Shown: piece after piece, positions 2,886 through 31,222 of the stretch
Numbering within the stretch: position 1 is the stretch's first letter
Layout: every line of letters starts with the position of its first letter
NCBI GenBank assembly: GCA_002269645.1
Contig: NIVC01000432.1
Location: 186,001 to 250,000 of the forward strand
Direction: 5' to 3'
Origin: Macrostomum lignano
Taxonomy: Eukaryota
DNA: 64,000 bases
The notes under the pieces: model-generated
The model's input: only the letters and a program-made list of their open reading frames with translations
What the model was told of the DNA's origin: nothing
Databases searched by the model: none
Translations under genes and position numbers: made by a program

Positions 2886-5800
2886 TCATCGCGCGACGCT
2901 CTGTGTGAGCTGCACCGGCTGCAGGCCGCACTGCTTCACGTCCGTCACGTCCTGGTCTGTTAGACGAAACGTGAATAACGGGCTGACGCTGCACTCTTCG
3001 ATTGCTTTGACGGTGTATCGGCACCACCGGCTGACGCTGAACTCCTGGCCAAGCTGGCAGGGCGAAGACCGCGCCTTGCCGCCAAGTCGGGGCTCCTCCA
3101 CAATCAGATAGCAGCTGGCGTTGCTGCCGTCCGAGTCGGCGTCGTTTGAAACATTTGACCTGCCAGCCTCGGATGGCAGCAGGCGGGCCTTCAGCTTGGC
3201 CAAATCAACGTCCAGGTGCAGGCAGATCCCGGCTTGGTACGTTGTTGCCGCGGTTGACGCGTCCAAGCCTTCGGACAGGCTGCTGGGATTGCGGCCGAGC
3301 CCGGAGTCGTCATGCCGACTGCTGCTTCGGCAGCCTACGCCAACGCCGCTGCCGACGCTGCCGCCGCACGAATAAGTCGACGCGTCGGCCGCCTCAAGAG
3401 CGGCATTGGTAGCCGCCGCCGCAGCCGCCGCAGAGACGGATGTAGCCGTGGAGCCGCGGCTGGTGGAGCGTAGGCCGGCCTGGCCAGAGCGGCGACTGAG
3501 CGGCCGGCTGCCGCTCGTGTGCAGAATTCGATAGCGAGTTCGGCTTCCGCCGATGCCAATGCCCAGTGGGCAGCAGAAGCTGCCGTCGGGCTGGCGCTGG
3601 AAGGGCGGCTGCAGCTCCAGGACGCTGTTGCTCGACAGCTGCTGCTGCTGCGCCGTGGCCGCATCGAGGCTGTTGTCATTGTTGCTGGCCATTGTCGAAC
3701 TAGCCGACGGTAGGTCGCGCTGCACAGTGACGTGGAGGCGAACGTCGCCGCCTTTGACCTCCTTGACGTAGAGGGACCGGCTGCGGACGGACAGCACGGA
3801 AGCTGGCAGCACACTGCGGTTGTCGGGATCCACCACGCTGATGAGGTAGTCGGACTCGTGGTCCAGGCTCACGCTTTCCATGGTGCGCATCGTCACCGGG
3901 TGGACGCTGCCCTCAAACACGATGGTGCGCGAGTCTGGGCGGGCCGTGCCGTCCTCGTGCCGGCCGAGCAGCTTCTCAACTCGGTAGATTTTGCGCTCCA
4001 AGCCGTTCACGGTGCCAATGATGAGGGTGTTTTGAACCGAATCAACGTCCAAAAAGAACTCGCCCAGCCAAGGCGTGTCGACGTCAATCGATTTTTCGTC
4101 GAATGTGACGTGGAGCACGAAGGTGGCACGTTGGTCGACCCGGCGTTCCATGAGGAAGTTCATGAACTTGGGCGCCAGGCGGGACTCCTGTACTCGAAGC
4201 ACCTTGCGCTCGGTGACGAGGTCCAGCAGCTCTAGAGGCTGGCCCATGTTAGGCAGCTTCACCATCAGGGTGTAGGGGGTGTCCCTGGCTGCGATCAGCT
4301 CGCAGCTGGCCTGCTCGTCCCCGGGTCGCAGAGACGCCGTCTGCAACTGCGGCTGGTCGCCCTCCTTGCGGCACAGCAGCTGAACGTCGATGTTGCGTTT
4401 CAACTGGTCGGGCTCCGGCAGGGTCACCGTCATGCGCTCCTTGCGCACCTGGTAGATGATGCGCATGTTTGGCAGGTACCTGCGCCAGGGCACGGATGGA
4501 AGGATGGAATTGATTTGTGCTGACTTTAGAGCACAGGCATGCTCAAGCGAGCCAATACTGTACTCAGGCTGTACTCATGCACACGCTCCCAGATCCCCGT
4601 GCTCACTTGCTAGTGGTATTTAAGCCGCTGGAATTGTCGAACCTGCGCAGCTTCATAGCAGATTTGGACGTCGCTGTAGCAACAGATTTAGTTTGCATCG
4701 GCCTCGTGAGCTGCTCCACATCGGCTTCAGCTTCGCCTTCGCCATCTCCGCAGCCGTCGCCTTCGCCCTGCGCCTCATCTTGGTACTGCTCCGCCTCCTG
4801 CTCCTCCAGCTGCTGGTCTTGCAGCTGTCGCTGCTGCTGCTGCTGTTGTTGTTGCTGTTGTTGTTGCTGTTGTTGCTGTTGTTGTCGATGACTTTCTCGC
4901 TGTCGCTGCTGCGGCGGTGGCGGCGGCGGTGCGGTAGCGATGGGGACTATGGAGACATCGGCGCAGGTTGCCGCGCCCTGGCTGCAGGTGCTCACCGTTG
5001 CGGACGCTTTGGCGCGCTGGAACCAGGTGGCGAACCAGCAGGCTAGGAGGCCGAGCTCTTTCACTTCAACGTCCTGCTCGTGCGGCGTCAGCGACAGCAG
5101 TGCGGTGGCCGGCTGCTGGTGACACTTTAGGCAGTACAGGTACTCGCTGTGCGGACTATAGGCTAGGCCAGGCCCCTGTAATTCAGGTAAGAGCAGCTTG
5201 CTTGCAGGAGCTGGGGTGCTGCTCAGGTAAGATAAGAGCAGCTCGTGTGCAGGAGCTGGGGTGCTGTTCAGGTAAGATAAGAGCAGCTTGTGTGCTGGAG
5301 CTGGGGTGCTGTTCAGGTAAGATAAGAGCAGCTTGCTTGCAGGAGCTGGGGTGCTGCTCAGGTAAGATAAGAGCAGCTCGTGTGCAGGAGCTGGGGTGCT
5401 GTTCAGGTAAGATAAGAGCAGCTTGTGTGCTGGAGCTGGGGTGCTGTTCAGGTAAGATAAGAGCAGCTTGTGTGCTGGAGCTGGGGTGCTGTTCAGATAA
5501 GAGCAGCTTGCGTGCAGGAGCTGGGGTGCTGTTCAGGTAAGAGCAGCTTGCGTGCAGGAGCTGGGGTGCTGTTCAGATAAGAGCAGCTTGCGTGCAGGAG
5601 CTGGGGTGCTGTTCAGGTAAGAGCAGCTTGCGTGCAGTATCTGGGGTGCTGTTCAGATAAGAGCAGCTTGCGTGCAGGAGCTGGAGTGCTGTTCAGGTAA
5701 GATAAGAGCAGCTTGTGTGCAGGATCTAAGATTAAGAAACTAAAACTTGAATTGAAAGGAAAGAGTTCAGCTAGAGAGGGAATTGGTAGGGCTACAAAAA

Positions 5801-10585: not shown

Positions 10586-13500
10586 ATGCGCAAGACGTCG
10601 AGTCCGAAACTGCGAGCGGCCACTCTGGCCCTGTGCGTGCTGGGCATCGTCCTCTGCCTCGCCGCCATGGGCCTCGCCCTCACCGTCCAGGGTCCAGCCA
10701 GAAGCCTGCGGCCGGTGCTGAGCTACGCTGACTCTGCCTACGTACCGATGTACCTGGACATGGCGGCTGCTGGCCTGGTTGTCCTGGCCGCTCTGACCGC
10801 ATTAATCAGCCAGCTGTACGGGAATCGAGGCCTGGACCTAGCCGCCTGTATCACCCTGGCCTTGGCGGCTGTTCTGGCTTTGGCGGCGCTGGGGCTGGCT
10901 GGCAGCTTGAAGGCCGGCAGCGCCCAGACCGGGCTGGAGGCCAGCCTGGACAGCTCGCTGCAGCGGTACGGCCCGAGCGATACGGCTCTGTACGAGGCCT
11001 GGAACCAGCTGCAGAAAGATGCCAAGTGCTGCGCTGTCCGCACCAACAGGGCTCAGATGGTGAGACTTCAAGTGCTTGTGTACTTCTAAAGTGTGAATGG
11101 GGAGGGTGAGCTCAAGCACACACAGGTGTGTGAATGGGGACAGTGAACTCTAGCACACACAGGTGCGTTAATGGGACAGTGAGTTCAAGAGCACACAAAC
11201 AGGTGTGTTAATGGGACAGTGAGCTCAAGAGCACACACAGGTGTGTGAATGGGACAGTGAGGTCAAGAGCACACACACAGGTGTGTGAATGGGACAGTGA
11301 GCTCTAGCACACACACAGGTGTGTGAATGGGACAGTGAGCTCTAGCACACACACAGGTGTGTGAATGGGACAGTGAGGTCAAGAGCACACACAGGTGTGT
11401 GAATGGGACAGTGAGGTCAAGAGCACACACAGGTGTGTTAATGGGACAGTGAGGTCAAGAGCACACACAGGTGTGTGAATGGGACAGTGAGGTCAAGAGC
11501 ACACACAGGTGTGTTAATGGGACAGTGAGGTCAAGAGCACACACAGGTGTGTGAATGGGACAGTGAGCTCAAGAGCACACACAGGTGTGTGAATGGGACA
11601 GTGAGCTCAAGAGCACACACACAGATGTGTGAATGGGACTCAAGCACTCAAGCACAAGCACTCCAGGACTCAAGACTCAAGCACACACAGGTGTTTCTAT
11701 CATTACTTGCAAGTACTCGTAGGCCTTTTTTGAGTTCCTCATGACGTCGCGGCCCATTGCTGAGTAGGCAGCACTCAACCCGCCCTCCTCCAGGCCTACA
11801 AGAACACGCCCTGGTACCGCCAGCTCAGCGAAGGCACACCGCACACGACGCCAAACATTCCGGACAGCTGCTGCACCGCAGAGGCGCACGCCGACCCGGC
11901 CAAACTGGCCGACTGCACCAACAACCGGCCGGCCGTGCCCTCAGAGAATCCCTACATGCATCCTATCGGCTGTTTTGAGGCCTGCACTGCCGACTTGGAG
12001 GCCTTCAGTAATCGGCACATCATCGTCGGCGTGTTGGTGTTTTTTGGTGCCGTTCTGGCCGCCGGCCCCGTTGCTTTAGGCCTGGTGCAGAGCTGCAGAC
12101 AGCAGGCAGGCAATCAGCTGAAGCAGAAACAGCGGGAACAACAATTTGGCAACTCGAGGCCAGGTAACAATATTTCATCTTCAATCGTAGAAACTTTAAC
12201 AAAGTTGAGAGATTCTTAAAGTGACTGACAGATTCCCAAGGTCGCTGAAAAATTTCCAAAGGTCGCTAAGAGATCCCCCAACGTTTATGAGGAATTCCCA
12301 AGGTCATCGAGAGATTTCCAAGGTCGCTAAGAGATCCCCCAATTTTATAAGGAATTCCCAAGGTCATCGAGAGATTTCCAAGGTCGTTAAGAGATCCCCC
12401 AATTTTATAAGGAATTCCCAAGGTCATCGAGAGATTTCCAAGGTCGCCAAGAGATCCGCCAAGTTTATGAGGAATTCCCAAGGTCATTGAGAGATTTTCC
12501 AAGGTCGCTAAGAGACCCCAAATGTTTTTGAGGAATTCCCAAGGTCATCAAGGATTTCCAAGGTCGCTAAAAGACCACCCAAAGTTCCTGGGTCTTGGGA
12601 AAAATTCCCAAGATCATTGAGAGATTTTCAAGTTCTCTAAGAGATCCCCCAATTTTATGAAGAATTCCCTAGGTCATTGAGAGATTTTCCAAGGTCGCTA
12701 AGAGACCCCAAATGTTTTTGAGGAATTCCCAAGGTCATCAAGGATTTCCAAGGTCGCTAAAAGACCACCCAAAGTTCCTGGGTCTTGGGAAAAATTCCCA
12801 AGATCATTGAGAGATTTTCAAGTTCTCTAAGAGATCCCCCAATTTTATGAAGAATTCCCTAGGTCATTGAGAGATTTTCCAAGGTCGCTAAGAGACCCCA
12901 AATGTTTTTGAGGAATTCCCAAGGTCATTGAGAGATTTTCAAGGTCGCAGAGAGATTTCCTAAGGTTACTGAGAGATTCTCAAGGTCGCTAAGAGACTTC
13001 CAAGGTTGTGGAGAAATTTATAAGATTATTAAACTTTCCGTAGGGACGTTCGGTGAATCTCAAAGTCATTGAGTGAGTTCCAAGATCATTAATAATTCCC
13101 AACCGCTCATGCGTTTTCCAAGGTTCCATTAAGATATTTCCCAAGATCACCGATTCATCCGACACTCTAGCTTTATTGCGGGATTCCCTCAAGTTCATTA
13201 GGAATTTCCATGACAACTACCTACGATGCCGCACGCTTCAACGTCATTTATCAGGCAGCGTAGTTGGCAGCTTGCGCGGCGGCCATCAGCAGTCTCTGCT
13301 GACGTCCCAGCCGCTCCGGTCGGGCTCCTCGGTGTACAACAGCCGGCACTCGCTGTTCAGCGAGCCGCCAGGCACTTGCGGGGGCGTCAACGGGCTCAAC
13401 AGGCCGCCATCGGAGTCGTCTTTGCCAAGCGTGGCGGCCCGGTCACTGTTCAGTGAGCCGCCGGTTCGTCCGCCGCCCAATGCTATCCACGCTCAACCGG

Positions 13501-13907
13501 TCAGACCTCGGCAGCAGAAGCAGCAGCAGCAGCAGCAGCCGCAGCAGCAGCAGCCGCAGCCGCAGCAGCAGCAGCCGCAGCCGCAGCAGCAGCCACCGGT
13601 ACCGAAGCCCCGCGCCAGTCTGGCCAACAGTAGTGTAGCGGCCCAGTATCCCAGCGAAACCGGCGAAGAAGCCTCATTTGGCAGCTTGACAGTGGCCAGC
13701 CAGCCAGCGCAGCCGCAGGCGCAGAAATCAGCCGCCCCTCAGGCGCTGCAAGCGCAGCCAATGAAGCGACCGCCTCAGCAGCAGCACAAGCCGGCCATCG
13801 CCTTGTCCGCCCAGCCTCTGAAGCCGCGGAACCCACAGCAACAGCAACAGCGTCATCTTGGGCCGCCGCCGGTGCAGGCGGGCAAAAAACGGCAATCGAA
13901 CTTTTGA
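10586..13907 (+). CDS. Atypical tetraspanin (about 498 aa) with CCA in place of CCG and a long Q/P/S-rich C-terminal tail
   Basis: Exons 10586-11059 (ATG|GTGAGA), 11794-12163 (ctccAG; CCA G|GTAACA) and 13255-13907 (ttatcAG|GC), all phase-consistent. Three N-terminal TM segments, a large loop with KCCA..PDSCC..C..GC, then TM4 HIIVGVLVFFGAVLAAG. Confidence 0.8.
11090..11692. repeat. 38-40-bp minisatellite filling tetraspanin intron 1 (same family as 7826-8308)
   Basis: Units gggacagtgag(g/c)tcaagagcacacacaggtgtgtgaat. Confidence 0.95.
12225..13210. repeat. About 60-bp degenerate minisatellite filling tetraspanin intron 2, with a 190-bp higher-order duplication
   Basis: Unit aaggtcgctaagagatcccccaattttataaggaattcccaaggtcatcgagagatttcc; a block recurs at 12481, 12671 and 12861. 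Confidence 0.9.
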
Positions 13908-15079: not shown

Positions 15080-15572
15080 GTCGGGACACAGATCTCAAGG
15101 ACACGAATGGTGCAGTTGGGACACAGATCTCAAGGACACGAATGGTGCAGTTGGGACACAGATCTCAAGGACACGAATAGTGCAGTTGGGACACAGATCT
15201 CAAGGACACGAATGGTGCAGTTGGGACACAGATCTCAAGGACACGAATGGTGCAGTTGGGACACAGATCTCAAGGACACGAATGGTGCAGTTGGGACACA
15301 GATCTCAAGGACACGAATAGTGCAGTTGGGACACAGATCTCGAGGACACGAATGGTGCAGTTGGGACACAGATCTCAAGGACACGAATGGTGCAGTTGGG
15401 ACACAGATCTCAAGGACACGAATAGTGCAGTTGGGACACAGATCTCAAGGACACGAATGGTGCAGTTGGGACACAGATCTCAAGGACACGAATGGTGCAG
15501 TTGGGACACAGATCTCAAGGACACGAATGGTGCAGTTGGGACACAGATCTCAAGGACACGAATGGTGCACTT
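15080..15572. repeat. 35-bp minisatellite (ggacacagatctcaaggacacgaatggtgcagttg), about 14 copies
   Basis: Direct reading; it explains the ORFs at 15072, 15107 and 15247. Confidence 0.96.
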
Positions 15573-17074
15573 TGGGAACATGCGACGAACAAGTGAGGCA
15601 ATTGCTCCACTTGTTCCAAGCATGCACTGTGCAATTCTCGAGAGTATATCTTCACGAAAGCTTCCAGGAATAGAGCAACAGTGGAAAAATTGATGTCACG
15701 GTTTGCAGTCGACGGTCAATGTGACACTATGCGTGTCCTGTCGTTGCAAACGCTACAGAAGTTGACACCAAGCTTCCAGTAGGCCTACATCCGCGTGTAT
15801 CCGTGTTGGCAAATGTTTGCCCACTGCACAGAGCAATGCTGGCTACGAGTACACTTGGATCACCAAACAGCTGGTATATGTTCCACGCTTCCTTGTAAAG
15901 CGCTGCTGTTTGCTTTGTAATTCAAATTTCACCCAACTTCCGTTTGGCACCAAAAAGTGACTTTTCTTATTAAAAAAGCTTCCTGTTTCGATGAAGTGAA
16001 TTTATGAAATCTTTGAGACGAAGATGATTGACTCGATTCAAAAGCTACAATCATGTTGCAGATGCAAAATTTCTCCGATTTACAATAGCTAGACTACAGT
16101 AGATGTTTTACTGATGAAGTTACATCATATATTAGCAGCAGAAGCAGCTATATATAGAAATACACTAGCAATCTGCGCAGCCCGATAAGGAAAGCAGCAA
16201 AGCAAGAGAAGAAATATTTTTGAATAAATTAAATGTAGCTTTTGGCCTTGTACAGCCACTATATTGTTAGTTTTTTAAAGGAAAATCATGTTTGAAGCAA
16301 AGAAGCATCCGCCCTGAAATCCAGCTATCTGGGCTAAGCTATCAGCATCTCCTATGAGCTTTGGGATCAAAGCCTCCCTTTAAGACATCGCTCAACCCTG
16401 ACTCTCCCTTCGATACTTAGCCTACTAACTCCCAATTGATCCCTGGCATCTGAGCAACCCTTTTCCCGTGAGTCACAGCATTTTAGCAATCCCCCCCCCT
16501 GCATGAACGAGATTTCAGCAATTTCTCCATGAGTCTTCTGTGGTTGACAAGTTGATTCTTTTATGTTAAGTTCTTTTTCTTTTGTTAAGTCTGCTTCAGT
16601 TGATGAAAGCTTTTATTAAAAATAATTTTATATGATCAAAATTCCAACCCAGGTAGCTGCATTAGCAGTTCAGTCTGCTCTCATCTAGGCTAACTTTCGT
16701 TCATTGTAGCACTTTACTAGGTAGATAGATATCTAGAGCAAAACCATTTTTAGTATAGTGGACTAGCACAAAAATAATGCCCCCTTCGGGGCGACCAGTA
16801 AGCAAGGCATGAAATTTATTTTTGTGAATCCTTTGCCTTGACATCTCAGCAATCCCCCCGTAAGTCATGACATCTCAACAATTTAGTAGAGTGGAAACGA
16901 CTAACTAATTGCTTATGAATTAGTTCTCTCATCAAGCCGCTTAGAGTAAAAATTACAGGAAGCAGTTATGGCGTAATCAAGTTCTCAAGCAGTCATTATC
17001 AGTCTCTATTACAGTTAACTAAAGGGTCGACGCAGTCTAAATCAAGTCTAAGTTGCAATTGTTACGCAATTCAG

Positions 17075-18843: not shown

Positions 18844-19288
18844 TTAACGACGCCGCCTATTGCCGGATCCTTCGTGTGGATTCACGGGCCACCAGCGCTT
18901 GCTAATGTAGGAATCGGGATAATTATCCCAGGCGCTGGCTGGCAGCTCCAGGGAGGGCCTGCCGTGGCCAACCCTCTTCACCTGGATGTTGTCAGCGTCA
19001 TAGTACTTCACGGGCCACCAGCGCTTGCCTCTGCGGGGCAGTTGCAGGTTGTTCAGATGATTTCTTAGAAGTACAAGTCATGCGTCATCATCAAAACTGA
19101 ATTTTCCTCACCCAAATCGGCGCACCTCCAGTGGACGGGCGCTACAGATGGCTGCGGCGGCTGTAATTTTAATGGTTCCTTGTAATCCATAATTCATAAG
19201 GGAAACTTTATACCCAACTCAAGAGGATATTCTTGGATCAGTTTTGCTTACCAATCAAAGCAACCAGCAGCACAGTGATCAGCTTCAT
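18844..19288 (-). CDS. Secreted neuropeptide/prohormone-like precursor (101 aa) with two WWPV peptides; not in the ORF track
   Basis: Exons 19288-19252 (ATT G|GTAAGC), 19160-19112 (attacAG; TTT GG|GTGAGG) and 19063-18844 (cttctaAG; TAA) splice in frame to MKLITVLLVALIAAAAICSARPLEVRRFGNHLNNLQLPRRGKRWWPVKYYDADNIQVKRVGHGRPSLELPASAWDNYPDSYISKRWWPVNPHEGSGNRRRR*. This gives a signal-peptide-like N-terminus plus repeated dibasic sites. Confidence 0.85.
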
Positions 19289-19504
19289 CGTCTCAGTCGT
19301 TTATGCAGATCAGATATTTTCTCCGTTGCTTTATGGACCAGTGGTGAGTCTATAAGCTGTTTTGCTGCCAGGAATCGCGCACTGTGAAAGCAACTTCCGC
19401 AGAGGATTATAATAGGCATCGCCTCCTCATTTGCGGGGGATGGAACAGGTCCAGATGGCTATCAGCCAATCAGAGCGGAGACGGCCGAATGCCAACGTGT
19501 AACA

Positions 19505-20520
19505 GTACTCAGAAATCTCTCCAGATGACCACAGATGCTGGAGTGACACTGCTCAGAAATCTCTCCAGATGACCAATGATGCTGGACTGACAGTGCTCAG
19601 AAATCTCCCCAGATGACTAAGTATGCTGGAGTGGCAGTGCTCAGAAATCTCTCCAGATGACCACAGATGCTGGAGTGACACTCCTCAGAAATCTCTCCAG
19701 ATGAACAAGGATGCTGGAGTGGCACTGCTCAGAAATCTCTCCAGATGACCACAGATGCTGGAGTGACACTCCTCAGAAATCTCTCCAGATGAACAAGGAT
19801 GCTGGAGTGGCACTGCTCAGAAATCTCTCCAGATGACCAGGAATGCTGGAGTGGCAGTGCTCAGAAATCTCTCCAGATGACCAAGGATGCTGGAGTGGCA
19901 GTACTCAGAAATCTCTCCAGATGACCAAGGATGCTGGAGTGGCAGTGCTCAGAAATCTCTCCAGATGACCACAGATGCTGGAGTGACAGTGCTCAGAAAT
20001 CTCCCCAGATGACTAAACATGCTGGACTGACAGTGCTCAGAAATCTCCCCAGATGACCACAGATGCTGGACTGACAGTGCTCAGAAATCTCTCCAGATGA
20101 CCACAGATGCTGGAGTGGCAGTGCTCAGAATTCTCTCCAGATAACCACAGATGCTGGAGTGGCATTGCTCAGAAATCTCTCCAGATGACCAAGGATGCTG
20201 GAGTGACACTGCTCAGAAATCTCTCCAGATGACCACAGATGCTGGAGTGACACTGCTCAGAAATCTCTTCAGATGAACAAGGATGCTGGAGTGACACTGC
20301 TCAGAAATCTCTCCAGATGACCACAGATGCTGGAGTGACACTGCTCAGAAATCTCTTCAGATGAACAAGGATGCTGGAGTGACACTGCTCAGAAAGCTCT
20401 CCAGATGACCAAGAATGCTGGACTGACAGTGCTCAGAAATCTCCCCAGATGACCAGGGATGCTGGAGTGGCAGTGCTCAGAAATCTCCCCAGATGACCAA
20501 GCATGCTGGAGTGACTCAGA
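19505..20520. repeat. 44-bp minisatellite (gatgctggagtgacactgctcagaaatctctccagatgaccaca), about 23 copies
   Basis: Direct reading; probably lies in the 5' UTR intron of the 18844-19288 gene. Confidence 0.96.
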
Positions 20521-21395
20521 AATGCCACCCATTACTTCTACCAAAGCTGATGGAATGACAGTGCAGATAATTTTGAGCGCACATTTTTCTGTGGATAAAA
20601 ATTTTGATCATCAAAACATCCATGTGCTTCAGATAGGCAATGAAAGCCATATAGATAAAGCAGAAAGTAGTGTGACAGGTGAGGTGACACTTGTGATCGC
20701 AATTAAAATGCCCAGAGCCGTATTGCACACCTTGAAATCGAGTACTAGGTAAATGATCTGAAATGAGATTGCAAAACCAGCTCATACTCACCTGCCTCAG
20801 GTCTGCAAGGTGATAACTCATCCCGAACCGTCTCCCCCCATCCCCTACTCAACAACTGGTCGCTGAAGCTATCCGCTACCCACTCGACACTTCGTGCCAA
20901 TTAGTGGATTTCCATTAGGTGAGGATGGCCCGACACGAGCAGGCTCAGGGCGATGCTCTAATGCCTTGCGCTTATCCGTGTCAGCCAAACTCCATAGCTA
21001 CCTATTCCCATGCGAATTGCGTGCTCAGGGATGTCCGAGCAGCCATCAGGCTGGCTGGCTGGCTGACTCGGCTCTCGCAGTTATTGACAGGATCGCCCGA
21101 GAGAAGAGACAGAGAGAGGGAGAGAGGAGGGGGGCAGAAAACAGCGCATGCCGTAAAGCCTGCTGCTGTTGCTTGGCGTGTTGACTCGTTGCCAGTCAGT
21201 TACTAAACTTGGGCACTTCATGGGAATTCTACCGGAATCTAGCGGTATCAGATTTCTTGCGCCAACCTCTGCCGCCGTGGGTACGGCGCATATTGTAAAA
21301 AGATGCAAGCAAAGCCTGAGAATCAATACAGGTGAAGGTGCAAGCGCGTCGTCTCCAGGGAGCGGAGGCGGATAGCGAGAGAAACGAATGTCGAT

Positions 21396-21708
<313 letters not shown>

Positions 21709-26610: not shown

Positions 26611-26969
26611 TTATCCCACACCAGTGGAGCGCCGATTAACAATGCCGAACACGGTCTCCCAGTCGAACTCTTCGTAAGTTTGAGTTTCCATCTCGCAGCC
26701 GGCAAAGCCGCTGCCGAACGCGTCGTTAGTTTGAGTCTCCATGTCGAGCAGCTGCTCAAGCGGATCTGGGCCAGCCTGAATGCCCAGAGTGATGGGCGGT
26801 GAGGCGCCGGAGCCAACGCAGACGCCTTGAGTTATGCCGGAATTGTTGGATTGAGACGATTGAGTCGCCTGCTGTTGCTGCTGCTGCTGCTGATAAGAGT
26901 ACTGGACCCCAACAGAGTAACCATCCGTAGCAATAGGAGAAGTGTACTCTGTCTGAGTATGCATAGTGC

Positions 26970-27000
<31 letters not shown>

Positions 27001-29373
27001 ATTGGAATCTTGAAATGACACAACAGCAAAATTGGAACAGCTGGAGCCCCGGAAGCTGGCATGATCGTGCACCATCACTGGGCCAGTGTGATGATGCGCC
27101 CTGTACAGCATTGGCTGCTGCTGGCTGTACAGGTAAGACGGCGGGTGAAACTCATTAGTCAGGGCCAAGTCTGTCTGGCAGGCTCGGGTCTCAGTTGGCA
27201 GCGGCCGGGGCACCAGCGGCCGGTAGCGGCTTGTTGGGCCCGATGCATTGTTAGCATTAGCGCTGGCGTTAGCGCTGCTGGCAGCCGTAGCTTTAGCCGC
27301 GGCGGCAGCCGCATCAGCTGAGACGGACATCACCGAGGCTGAGGGAGCGCCGCCGCCAAGGCCGGTGAGCACAATCACCAGGTTCATTGGCTTTGGCGAC
27401 TCACTGACGGCCGGAGCACTGGCGAGCGACGCGCTGACGTCGCCACCGAAGCCGCTGGCTGCGGCGGGACTCTGGACAACTCGATCGTCCAGATCAACGT
27501 CTTCGGCGTTGCCAGTCCGCCGCTGTTCATTCTTCAGTCCACGGCACTGCGGCCTGCGTCGTTGGCGCTGATTGAAGATGCTGTTAGCGCCGTGGCCAGT
27601 CTTCTTGAAGTGGCTGCGCAAGTTTTTCAAATCCCGATAGAACCGGGAGCACTCTTCGCAATTGAAGAATCTGCCGCAGTCGCGCAGGTGAAGGCTGAGC
27701 AGAGAGTCGGATGGGAAGCGGCGGGAACAGTAGCGGCACTGGGATTTCTTCTCCACGTGCTTCCAGCTGTAGTGCTGCGGGATTGAGCGTTTGGAAATTG
27801 TTTAAGGGACTCCCTGCTGACACTGCCAGGGAGGAATTCCCTGCTGACACTGCTAGGGGGATTCCCGGCTGACACAGCTAGGGGGGATTCCCTGCTGAAA
27901 CTTCTGGGGGATTTCCTACTGACACTGCTGACACTTGAATTCCCTGCTGACACTGCTAATGGGATTCCCGGCTGACACTGCTGGAGGAATTCCCTGCTGA
28001 CACTGCTAGGGGGATTCCCGGCTGACACTGCTAGGGGGATTCCCGGCTGACACTGCTAGGGGGATTCCCGGCTGACACTGCTAGGGGATTCCCTGCTGAC
28101 ACTGTTGGGGTGCTAGGGGGATTCCGTGCTGACACTGCTAGGGTGCTAGGGGGATTCCCTGCTGACACTGCTAGGGGGTTTCCCGGCTGACACTGCTAGA
28201 GGAATTCCCAGCTGACACTGCTAGGGGGATTCCCGGCTGAAACTTCTGGGGGATTTCCTGCTGACACTGCTAGGGGGATTCCCTGCTGACACTGCTAGGG
28301 GGGATTCCCTGCTGACACTGATAGGGGGGATTCCCTGCTGACACTGCTAGGAGGGATTCCTTGCTGATACTGCTAGGGGGATTCCCTGCTGACACTGCTA
28401 GGAGGATTCCCTGCTGACACTGCTAGGAGGATTCCCTGCTGACACTGCTAGGAGGATTCCCGGCTGACACTGCTAGGAGGATTCCCGGCTGACACTGTTG
28501 GGGTGGGGATTCCCTGCTGACACTGCTAGGGAGGATTCCCGGCTGACACTGCTAGGGGGATTCCCGGCTGACACTGCTAGGGGATTCCCTGCTGACACTG
28601 TTGGGGTGCTAGGGGGATTCCGTGCTGACACTGCTAGGGTGCTAGGGGGATTCCCTGCCGACACTGCTAGGGGGATTCCCGGGTGACACTGCTAGAGGAA
28701 TTCCCAGCTGACACTGCTAGGGGGATTCCCGGCTGACACTGCTACGCGGATTCCTTGCTGACGCTGCTAGAGGGATTCCCGGCTGACACTGTTCGGGTGG
28801 GGATTCCCTGCTGACACTGCTAGGGGGATTCCCTGCTGACACTGCTAGGGGGGATTCCCTGCTGAAACTTCTGGGGGATTTCCTGCTGACACTGCTAGGG
28901 GGGATTCCCTGCTGACACTGCTAGGGGGGATTCCCTGCTGACACTGCTAGGGGGATTCCCTGCTGACACTGCAGGGAATTCCCTGCTGACACTGCCGTGG
29001 GGATTCTGTATCTCATCTCACACGAAGCCGAAAATAAAAAACATCTAACCTGTTTAACTCTAGACAGAGTTGTAAAAAACTCTCCCCGCAACTCGCTATA
29101 CGGACAGTTGATCTCCGGACAATGGTAGCGCTTGATTTCCGGAGCCGCTGACACGGCCGCGGCCAGAGCGGCGCTCGGATCAGAGCAGCGGTGAGTCTTG
29201 ACCATGTGGAAGCGCAGATTGCTAGTGGAACGGAATGGCAAATTGCACAGAGTGCATACTAGCGGAAATTCCGGACAGCTGAACTCTCTAATGAGCTCGG
29301 CTTTTGTTGGAGTGATTTTCAGTACAGCTGGCTGCTGCCGCTGTTGATCACCATCCCCCTGGCCGGGAAGCAT
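26611..29373 (-). CDS. ATMIN: ATM interactor / ASCIZ zinc-finger transcription factor (about 495 aa)
   Basis: Exons 29373-29050 (VKQ|GTTAGA) and 27774-26611 (cccgcAG|HYSWKHVEKK). Four ASCIZ-type zinc fingers (CTLC..HMVKTH; YHCPEINCP..VKQHY..H; CRYC..H..DC; CEEC..HFKKTGH) and C-terminal TQT LC8-binding motifs. Confidence 0.9.
27806..28990. repeat. 25-bp minisatellite (ccctgctgacactgctagggggatt) filling the ATMIN intron
   Basis: Direct reading; occupies about 1.18 kb of a 1275-bp intron. Confidence 0.96.
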
Positions 29374-29444
29374 GCTAGTCAGCGTCTGTTAACTCGCTGC
29401 ACAGTTGGCAACTTCAGGCAATAACAGAAATTTAAAGCAGCCTG

Positions 29445-31222
29445 CACTGGGGTGTTTTATGGGTGGGGTTGCGTCGGGAGCAGTGTACACTGGTCTGTTT
29501 TATGGGTGGGGTTGCGTCGGGAGCAGTGTGCACTGGGGTGTTTTATGGGTGGGGTTGCGTCGGGAGCAGTGTGCACTGGGGTGTTTTATGGGTGGGGTTG
29601 CGTCGGGAGCAGTGTACACTGGGGTGTTTTATGGGTGGGGTTGCGTCGGGAGCAGTGTACACTGGGGTGTTTTATGGATGGGGTTGTGTCGGGAGCAGTT
29701 TACACTGGGGTGTTTTATGGGTGGGGTTGCGTCGGGAGCAGTGTGCACTGGGGTGTTTTATGGGTGGGGTTGCGTCGGGAGCAGTGTACACTGGGGTGTT
29801 TTATGGATGGGGTTGTGTCGGGAGCAGTTTACACTGGGGTGTTTTATGGGTGGGGTTGCGTCGGGAGCAGTGTGCACTGGGGTGTTTTATGGCTGGGGTT
29901 GTGTCGGGAGCAGTGTGCACTGGGGTGTTTTATGGGTGGGGTTGCGTCGGGAGCAGTGTGCACTGGGGTGTTTTATGGGTGGGGTTGCGTCGGGAGCAGT
30001 GTACACTGGGGTGTTTTATGGATGGGGTTGTGTCGGGAGCAGTTTACACTGGGGTGTTTTATGGGTGGGGTTGCGTCGGGAGCAGTGTGCACTGGGGTGT
30101 TTTATGGCTGGGGTTGTGTCGGGAGCAGTGTGCACTGGGGTGTTTTATGGGTGGGGTTGCGTTGGGAGCAGTGTACACTGGGGTGTTTTATGGGTGGAGT
30201 TGCGTCGGGAGCAGTGTACACTGGGGTGTTTTTTGGGTGGGGTTGTGTCGGGAGCAGTGTACACTGGGGTGTTTTATGGGTGGGGTTGCGTCGGGAGCAG
30301 TGTACACTGGGGTGTTTTATGGATAGGGTTGTGTCGGGAGCAGTGTACACTGGGGTGTTTTATGGGTGGGGTTGTGTCGGGAGCAGTGTGCACTGGGGTG
30401 TTTTATGGGTGGGGTTGCGTCGGGAGCAGTGTACACTGGGCTGTTTTATGGGTGGGGTTGCGTCGGGAGCAGTGTGCACTGGGGTGTTTTATGGGTGGGG
30501 TTGTGTCGGGAGCAGTGTGCACTGGGGTGTTTTATGGGTGGGGTTGCGTTGGGAGCAGTGTACACTGGGGTGTTTTATGGGTGGGGTTGCGTAGGGAGCA
30601 GTGTACACTGGGGTGTTTTATGGATGGGGTTGCGTCGGGAGCAGTGTACACTGGGGTGTTTTATGGATGGGGTTGCGTCGGGAGCAGTGTGCACTGGGGT
30701 GTTTTATGGGTGGGGTTGCGTCGGGAGCAGTGTGCACTGGTGTGTTTTATGGGTGGGGTTGCGTCGGGAGCAGTGTGCACTGGTGTGTTTTATGGCTGGG
30801 GTTGTGTCGGGAGCAGTGTACACTGGGGTGTTTTATGGCTGGGGTTGCGTCGGGAGCAGTGTGCACTGGGGTGTTTTATGGGTGGGGTTGCGTAGGGAGC
30901 AGTGTACACTGGGGTGTTTTATGGATGGGGTTGCGTCGGGAGCAGTGTACACTGGGGTGTTTTATGGATGGGGTTGCGTCGGGAGCAGTGTGCACTGGGG
31001 TGTTTTATGGGTGGGGTTGCGTCGGGAGCAGTGTGCACTGGTGTGTTTTATGGCTGGGGTTGTGTCGGGAGCAGTGTACACTGGGGTGTTTTATGGCTGG
31101 GGTTGCGTCGGGAGCAGTGTGCACTGGGGTGTTTTATGAGGTGGGGTTGTGTCGGGAGCAGTGTACACTGGGGTGTTTTATGGATGGGGTTGTGTCGGGA
31201 GCAGCCTACACTGGGGTGTTTG
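29445..31222. repeat. 43-bp G-rich minisatellite (cgtcgggagcagtgtacactggggtgttttatgggtggggttg), about 41 copies
   Basis: 43-bp period; many units carry the palindrome CAGTGTACACTG and all carry four G-runs. Confidence 0.97.

Follow-up and report, generated by a model that had tools for sequence, protein, structure and literature searches.

A small minus-strand gene in a 64,000-nt stretch of the Macrostomum lignano genome (positions 186,001 to 250,000 of contig NIVC01000432.1; the window) probably encodes a secreted precursor that a convertase would process into peptides beginning with Trp-Trp-Pro (WWP). The gene, Mlig007078, is a real, transcribed three-exon gene that is annotated but uncharacterised, and sequence comparison suggests a WWP family seen in M. 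lignano only, as two paralogue groups with non-amidated, N-terminally conserved candidate peptides. We tentatively propose that WWPVKYYDA[DG]NI[QE]V, together with a second WWP-x peptide, represents a new neuropeptide or peptide-hormone family that is restricted to Macrostomum or to macrostomorphans and acts through an orphan receptor. A specifically neuronal or endocrine role for the products is plausible, but falls short of being probable.

M. lignano is the only flatworm in which transgenesis is routine, yet only a few peptide signals have been defined in it, and a two-gene family whose 14-residue, KR-flanked peptide is sharply conserved provides a concrete, synthesisable ligand candidate. 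The “hypothetical protein” entries of the M. lignano genome conceal peptide precursors, and comparison of paralogues can single out the bioactive part.

Gene structure and the intron 2 acceptor

The deposited GenBank counterpart of the gene is the 90-aa hypothetical protein BOX15_Mlig007078 (g1/g2; accessions PAA58252, PAA83139, and PAA88489; UniProt A0A267GT56). The protein is encoded on three scaffolds of GCA_002269645.1, one of which is NIVC01000432.1, with which the window is 100% identical over the 20,445 nt compared. A preliminary description of this DNA, made from its sequence, presented the gene as hidden; because it is deposited on three scaffolds with PAA accessions and a UniProt entry, it is not. 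The flatworm origin assumed in that description is correct. The annotation of this assembly derives exclusively from a genome-guided transcriptome (RNA-seq with STAR, StringTie, and TACO, together with de novo assembly and TransDecoder), from which alternative transcripts were dropped solely if their CDSs were identical (PMC5730564). Since the GenBank models of the assembly are RNA-seq-derived only, the splicing of the Mlig007078 model is RNA-supported (PMC5730564). Among public assemblies, no transcript contigs with the 90-aa protein were found, the matches being the three genome scaffolds only. The identifiers Mlig007078, Mlig013973, and Mlig028624 (the latter two from the paralogue group described below) are absent from the full-text literature searched and from the supplements of PMC5816591, PMC5730564, PMC7336406, PMC12896417, and PMC5946080. 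A different identifier set (Mlig455) serves the single-nucleus atlas of the species.

The three copies of the gene are 98% identical to one another. Their coding sequences differ by one synonymous change and their introns by two substitutions and one 7-nt indel, a divergence too small to inform on constraint. Intron 1 is 98 nt long in one other genomic copy, from a 7-nt insertion, and the deposited gene spans (445 and 452 nt, with a CDS of 273 nt) correspond to introns of 91 or 98 nt plus 81 nt. Read unspliced, the locus contains many stops. Because three copies and a diverged paralogue with matching exon phases share it, the gene structure is far beyond what chance would produce.

Table 1. 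Positions of the Mlig007078 gene features in the window, with both versions of intron 2 and exon 3
Feature	Position	Strand	Description
Putative core promoter	19407-19470	-	Inverted CCAAT box (ATTGG, 19466-19470) and TATA-like TATTATAA (19407-19414)
Exon 1 (CDS part)	19252-19288	-	37 nt; ATG 19288-19286; first 12.3 signal-peptide codons; followed by a phase-1 intron
Intron 1	19161-19251	-	91 nt, GTAAG...TTACAG
Exon 2	19112-19160	-	49 nt; codes for the last signal-peptide residues (..AAAAICSA) plus RPLEVRRFG(G); next intron in phase 2
Intron 2, deposited RNA-derived model	19031-19111	-	81 nt, GTGAGG...CCCCGCAG; acceptor CAG at 19031
Exon 3 CDS, deposited model	18844-19030	-	187 nt including TAA stop 18844-18846
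Intron 2, preliminary description	19064-19111	-	48 nt, GT..AG; AG at 19064-19065
Exon 3, preliminary description	18844-19063	-	220 nt
Disputed 33-nt stretch encoding NHLNNLQLPRR	19031-19063	-	Exonic in the preliminary description; the deposited model places it in intron 2
Signal peptide coding, aa 1-20, MKLITVLLVALIAAAAICSA	19138-19288	-	Split by intron 1; predicted cleavage after Ala20
Peptide 1 WWPVKYYDADNIQV, 14 aa	18979-19020	-	KR codons at 19021-19026 and 18973-18978; conserved family core
Acidic spacer VGHGRPSLELPASAWDNYPDSYIS, 24 aa	18901-18972	-	4/24 aligned residues the same in the paralogue, dN ~ dS
Peptide 2 WWPVNPHEGSGN, 12 aa	18859-18894	-	Preceded by KR (18895-18900); followed by RRRR (18847-18858), then the stop

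The exons of 37, 49, and 220 nt first proposed, with GT-AG introns of 91 and 48 nt, do join in frame to give 306 nt and a product of 101 aa, as originally quoted. The deposited 90-aa protein is identical to this product except for the absence of NHLNNLQLPRR, and is reproduced exactly from the window using the acceptor at 19031. Thus the proposed exons 1 and 2 and intron 1 agree with the deposited model, whereas the start of exon 3 differs from it by 33 nt. These 33 nt are intronic in the main transcript, although a minor in-frame isoform is possible. This assignment rests on the RNA-derived 81-nt intron, on the alignment with the paralogue's CCTAAT, and on the sizes of the four supported introns across both paralogue groups (79-98 nt).

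It is very unlikely that the 101-aa isoform, made with the AAG acceptor at 19064, accounts for most or even a sizeable share of the product. In this isoform the precursor would gain NHLNNLQLPRR, along with an R-G-K-R site of furin type and an amidated peptide of the form ...LPRR. The acceptor is a legal AG, the frame is kept with either acceptor, TGAC branch-point-like motifs lie 14 and 21 nt upstream of it, and the upstream pyrimidine content is similar for the two sites (0.60 for 19064 and 0.55 for the other). The 33 nt are also open and invariant in all three copies, but with copies that are 98% identical this invariance carries no weight. By contrast, the 90-aa protein is what each of the three deposited, RNA-derived copies encodes, and the 101-aa protein is absent from the database even though alternatives with differing CDSs were retained. 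The paralogue is without a segment equivalent to NHLNNLQLPRR, and its acceptor lies 7 nt before the KR codons; the corresponding distance is 4 nt for the 90-aa model but 37 nt for the 101-aa one. The AAG at 19064 sits inside a branch-point-like TTCTAAG, which aligns with the similarly branch-point-like CCTAAT about 30 nt before the paralogue's acceptor, and the 48-nt intron that it defines is shorter than any of the supported family introns. AAG is the rarest among the usual acceptor triplets. With the deposited intron 2 ending at 19031 (CAG), the stretch behind the proposed LPRR peptide is intronic; both this amidated peptide and the 101-aa product need an acceptor that is used by neither the deposited model nor the paralogue.

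Layout of the putative precursor, the diverged paralogue, and constraint

The signal peptide proposed earlier is borne out by inspection of the N-terminus, which consists of MK, a 15-residue hydrophobic core, and C-S-A with small residues at -3 and -1, and by AlphaFold2, which predicts a single confident helix at residues 2-19. The remainder of the model has pLDDT <50 (mean 55); it was built from an alignment of two sequences only, and the predicted lack of a fold is weak evidence. There is no cysteine in the product beyond the signal peptide. The two WWP peptides lie beside dibasic sites as first described, in the arrangements KR-peptide 1-KR and KR-peptide 2-RRRR, and the KR-WWP starts are kept in the paralogue. 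The 18-nt motif AAGCGCTGGTGGCCCGTG, which encodes KRWWPV, was reported to occur twice, and indeed has exactly two occurrences (19009-19026 and 18883-18900) and none elsewhere in the window.

In an HMMER search that covered 1.84 billion representatives exhaustively, one other credible relative was identified (E = 4e-6), on a scaffold that differs from that of the window; its cluster comprises the 89-aa paralogue group BOX15_Mlig013973g1/g2 and BOX15_Mlig028624g1 (PAA70515, PAA74368, and PAA70533). Each of the two paralogue groups has three copies, and neither the window nor the fetched loci contained a further family copy. The complete paralogue reads MRLLPTVLLLAVALFGSCALLADA / HPSAGGVH-KR-WWPVKYYDAGNIEV-KR-HHNGGQPAWDQPSEPAQVREVAAASGHGH-KR-WWPQQEAV, followed by the stop, and its signal region comprises MR, a core, and A-D-A. 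Its gene has a 37-nt exon 1 (phase 1), a 79-nt intron, a 52-nt exon 2 (phase 2), and a 92-nt intron. The paralogue is similar to the window gene in its three-exon plan, its intron phases, and the order signal peptide-propeptide-KR-WWPVKYYDAxNIxV-KR-spacer-KR-WWP peptide. However, the two proteins are 39% identical overall, the second peptide of the paralogue is WWPQQEAV, and the paralogue is without the Gly before the first KR, the RR in the propeptide, and the C-terminal RRRR of the window gene.

Three annotation points concern these searches and entries. A third HMMER match, which matched just the hydrophobic signal-peptide stretch, is likely spurious. PAA70515 (positions 5001-5504 of the fetched locus on NIVC01001231.1) is a 5'-partial CDS whose translation includes 5'-UTR, read as SCLTAPYPTPRSYSSQCSRNK, before the real start Met. 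One paralogue entry (A0A1I8ISX4) is called “WW domain-containing protein” by UniProt, a name that is unsupported, with no Pfam match at E <= 10.

Comparison of one paralogue pair reveals very uneven divergence along the precursor. The 18 codons of KR-WWPVKYYDA(D/G)NI(Q/E)V-KR carry seven synonymous and two non-synonymous differences (dN 0.05, dS ~1.9), such that 12 of the 14 residues of peptide 1, and 16 of 18 codons when both KR pairs are counted, specify the same residue. The second KR-WWP is likewise identical at the protein level. In the rest of the same pair (signal peptide, N-terminal propeptide, spacer), both types of change have reached saturation, at values of 1.1-1.5 for dN and dS alike; the spacer (24-29 residues) and the propeptide are unalignable, and the conserved blocks each begin exactly at a KR pair. 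Because dN is low there compared with saturation elsewhere, selection has kept one 14-residue peptide and the start of a second, plus their bounding dibasic pairs. Such a pattern of constraint is characteristic of a peptide precursor that is processed by convertases.

In both proteins, basic residues cluster more than in shuffled sequences (P = 0.003 for the Mlig007078 product and 0.01 for the paralogue), and six of the eight basic residues of the paralogue fall in its three KR pairs. The three conserved KR sites are without an Arg at P4, a feature of PC1/PC2-type rather than furin-type sites. An alternative is that the product is a small secreted protein left uncut and acting whole, such as a component of gland secretions, seminal fluid, mucus, or adhesive, in which the KR pairs form part of a conserved surface. 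Such a protein would fit the signal peptide, the lack of a domain, and the lineage restriction, which are shared by many Macrostomum gland and seminal-fluid transcripts, and would also fit WWP peptides without amidation. It would not readily explain why conservation is confined to two short blocks that each start from a KR pair, with an unalignable spacer and propeptide, why basic residues are paired more than shuffling predicts, or why a protein of ~70 residues has no cysteines and no predicted fold, and we consider it unlikely.

Calculated charges of -1 to -2 and pI values of 4.1-5.2 make the predicted peptides mildly acidic. Their computed monoisotopic masses are 1795.857 for WWPVKYYDADNIQV, 1738.836 for WWPVKYYDAGNIEV, 1378.605 for WWPVNPHEGSGN, 1042.487 for WWPQQEAV, and 1127.668 for RPLEVRRFG-NH2. 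An antimicrobial or defence peptide precursor cut by a furin-like enzyme, similar to multi-peptide immune precursors, could show the same multi-peptide layout, dibasic and tetrabasic sites, and Trp-rich N-termini. That reading is extremely improbable, with peptides that are predicted to be net acidic, neither cationic nor amphipathic, and with the P4 Arg of furin sites missing at the conserved positions.

Processing of the putative precursor and its relation to known peptides

In the processed-precursor reading, which we prefer, the 20-residue signal peptide would direct the precursor into the ER and would presumably be removed. A PC2-type convertase would then cleave behind each of the three Lys-Arg pairs, as well as at the terminal RRRR, within the regulated secretory pathway, and a carboxypeptidase would remove the basic residues. 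The predicted products are WWPVKYYDADNIQV, WWPVNPHEGSGN, the acidic spacer, and a short N-terminal fragment, RPLEVRRFG, which may be Gly-amidated in the window gene only. WWPVKYYDADNIQV would be the conserved and probably bioactive peptide, and the WWP peptides would most likely serve as extracellular signals, either as a neuropeptide or as a peptide hormone. A candidate enzyme is present: M. lignano has an essential PC2 homologue with expression in the nervous system, whose knock-down halts post-embryonic development (PMC4490696). The PC2 promoter of M. lignano drives pan-neuronal reporters, and worms in which PC2 is knocked down die and fail to complete reproductive development.

Two features of the WWP peptides are atypical for neuropeptides and argue against the processed-precursor reading, namely the lack of an amidation signal and conservation at the N-terminal end. 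Among bioactive peptides from convertase-processed precursors, C-terminal Gly amidation signals are frequent but dispensable. No Gly amidation signal is found on either WWP peptide, peptide 1 ending ..IQV-KR and peptide 2 ..SGN-RRRR. The sole G-KR of the 90-aa model comes after RPLEVRRFG, where the paralogue has ..GGVH-KR, and thus no amidation signal is conserved between the paralogues. In addition, bulky or beta-branched P1' residues, as in KR|W and KR|V, are less favoured by mammalian convertases.

The suggestion that the WWPV peptides belong to an undescribed family withstood searches of Pfam, protein databases, open full text, and planarian supplements, none of which returned a match, within a scope that excludes McVeigh 2009 and Koziol 2016. 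Neither the 90-aa, the 101-aa, nor the paralogue protein matches Pfam at E <= 10, and a profile search of the PDB gave nothing significant (best VirB7, E 0.58). No homologues outside M. lignano were found in 5.8 billion clusters or 1.84 billion representatives, and a two-paralogue profile added nothing; the protein collections searched exclude transcriptomes of other Macrostomum species, and non-M. lignano orthologues sharing only the 14-aa peptide could fall beyond the E-value limit used. A degenerate DNA pattern for KRWWPVKYYDA had 0 matches in JGI metagenome contigs. The 13 occurrences of “WWPV” in open full text are unrelated, “WWP” and “KRWW” are absent from the supplementary files of the planarian prohormone catalogue (PMC2953531), and the WWP peptide is unlisted in the M. 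lignano supplement sets searched.

In architecture the product reads as an ordinary small flatworm prohormone, with a sequence that appears to match none found. As in the spp/npp prohormone genes of Schmidtea mediterranea, the precursor is small (~90 aa) and encoded by short exons (Collins et al., 2010; PMC2953531). Mlig007078 further resembles flatworm prohormone genes in containing several KR-bounded peptides to which conservation is limited, and in its restricted distribution, many of those genes being taxon-restricted with no homologues beyond flatworms. Since taxon-restricted prohormones are common in flatworms, a gene of this kind is unsurprising. It differs from the flatworm prohormones in that there is no sequence similarity and that its predicted peptides are non-amidated and N- rather than C-terminally conserved.

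Precursors of the orcokinin and pedal peptide type contain repeated KR-flanked, non-amidated, slightly acidic peptides with the motif at the N-terminal end. Mlig007078 shows no sequence resemblance to them and has just two copies, and the analogy is with their architecture only.

Promoter region and genomic surroundings

The putative promoter elements of the window gene (Table 1), identified by direct reading, lie ~120-180 nt upstream of the ATG. In the paralogue ATTGGCT is followed by TATATAA, the order being that of the window gene, and the deposited transcript begins ~25-40 nt past the TATA; the promoters of the two paralogues are otherwise not alignable. A 44-codon upstream ORF (19285-19419, minus strand) begins within the TATA-like element, which its ATG overlaps, ends with its stop codon on the main ATG (..cgATGAag..), and would be relevant only if transcription begins further upstream than the TATA suggests. 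No AATAAA or ATTAAA poly(A) signal is present within 500 nt of the stop, and an Rfam search across the whole window found nothing.

Mlig007078 has a tetraspanin gene on one side and a C2H2 zinc-finger gene on the other, with exons of the flanking genes at 10586-11089 (plus strand) and 26611-29373 (minus strand), an arrangement common to all three copies. The tetraspanin gene encodes a 498-aa product (PF00335), and the other flanking gene a Gln-rich 495-aa product with C2H2 zinc-finger-like motifs, for which only a faint match to zf-C2H2_4 was obtained. The neighbourhood of zinc-finger, WWP, and tetraspanin genes is found three times in the assembly at ~90-98% identity, consistent with the hidden polyploidy and the redundant assembly reported for M. 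lignano.

Several repeats were observed in the same region. A tandem array at 19502-20515 (a 44-nt unit in 23 copies, with 90% matches) starts ~215 nt upstream of the ATG, just past the putative CCAAT/TATA region, and at least its proximal units are common to the other two copies. A (GATA)n microsatellite of ~78 copies (21393-21706) gives spurious long minus-strand ORFs. Tandem repeats at 29405-30895 and 15107-15693 are open in several frames, with repeated units of ~45 aa and ~35 aa in their translations, and are probably satellite-like rather than genes. At 13176-13907 on the plus strand, a long open frame rich in poly-Gln/Pro (QQQQPQQQQ...) may be either a low-complexity protein exon or a CAG-type repeat.
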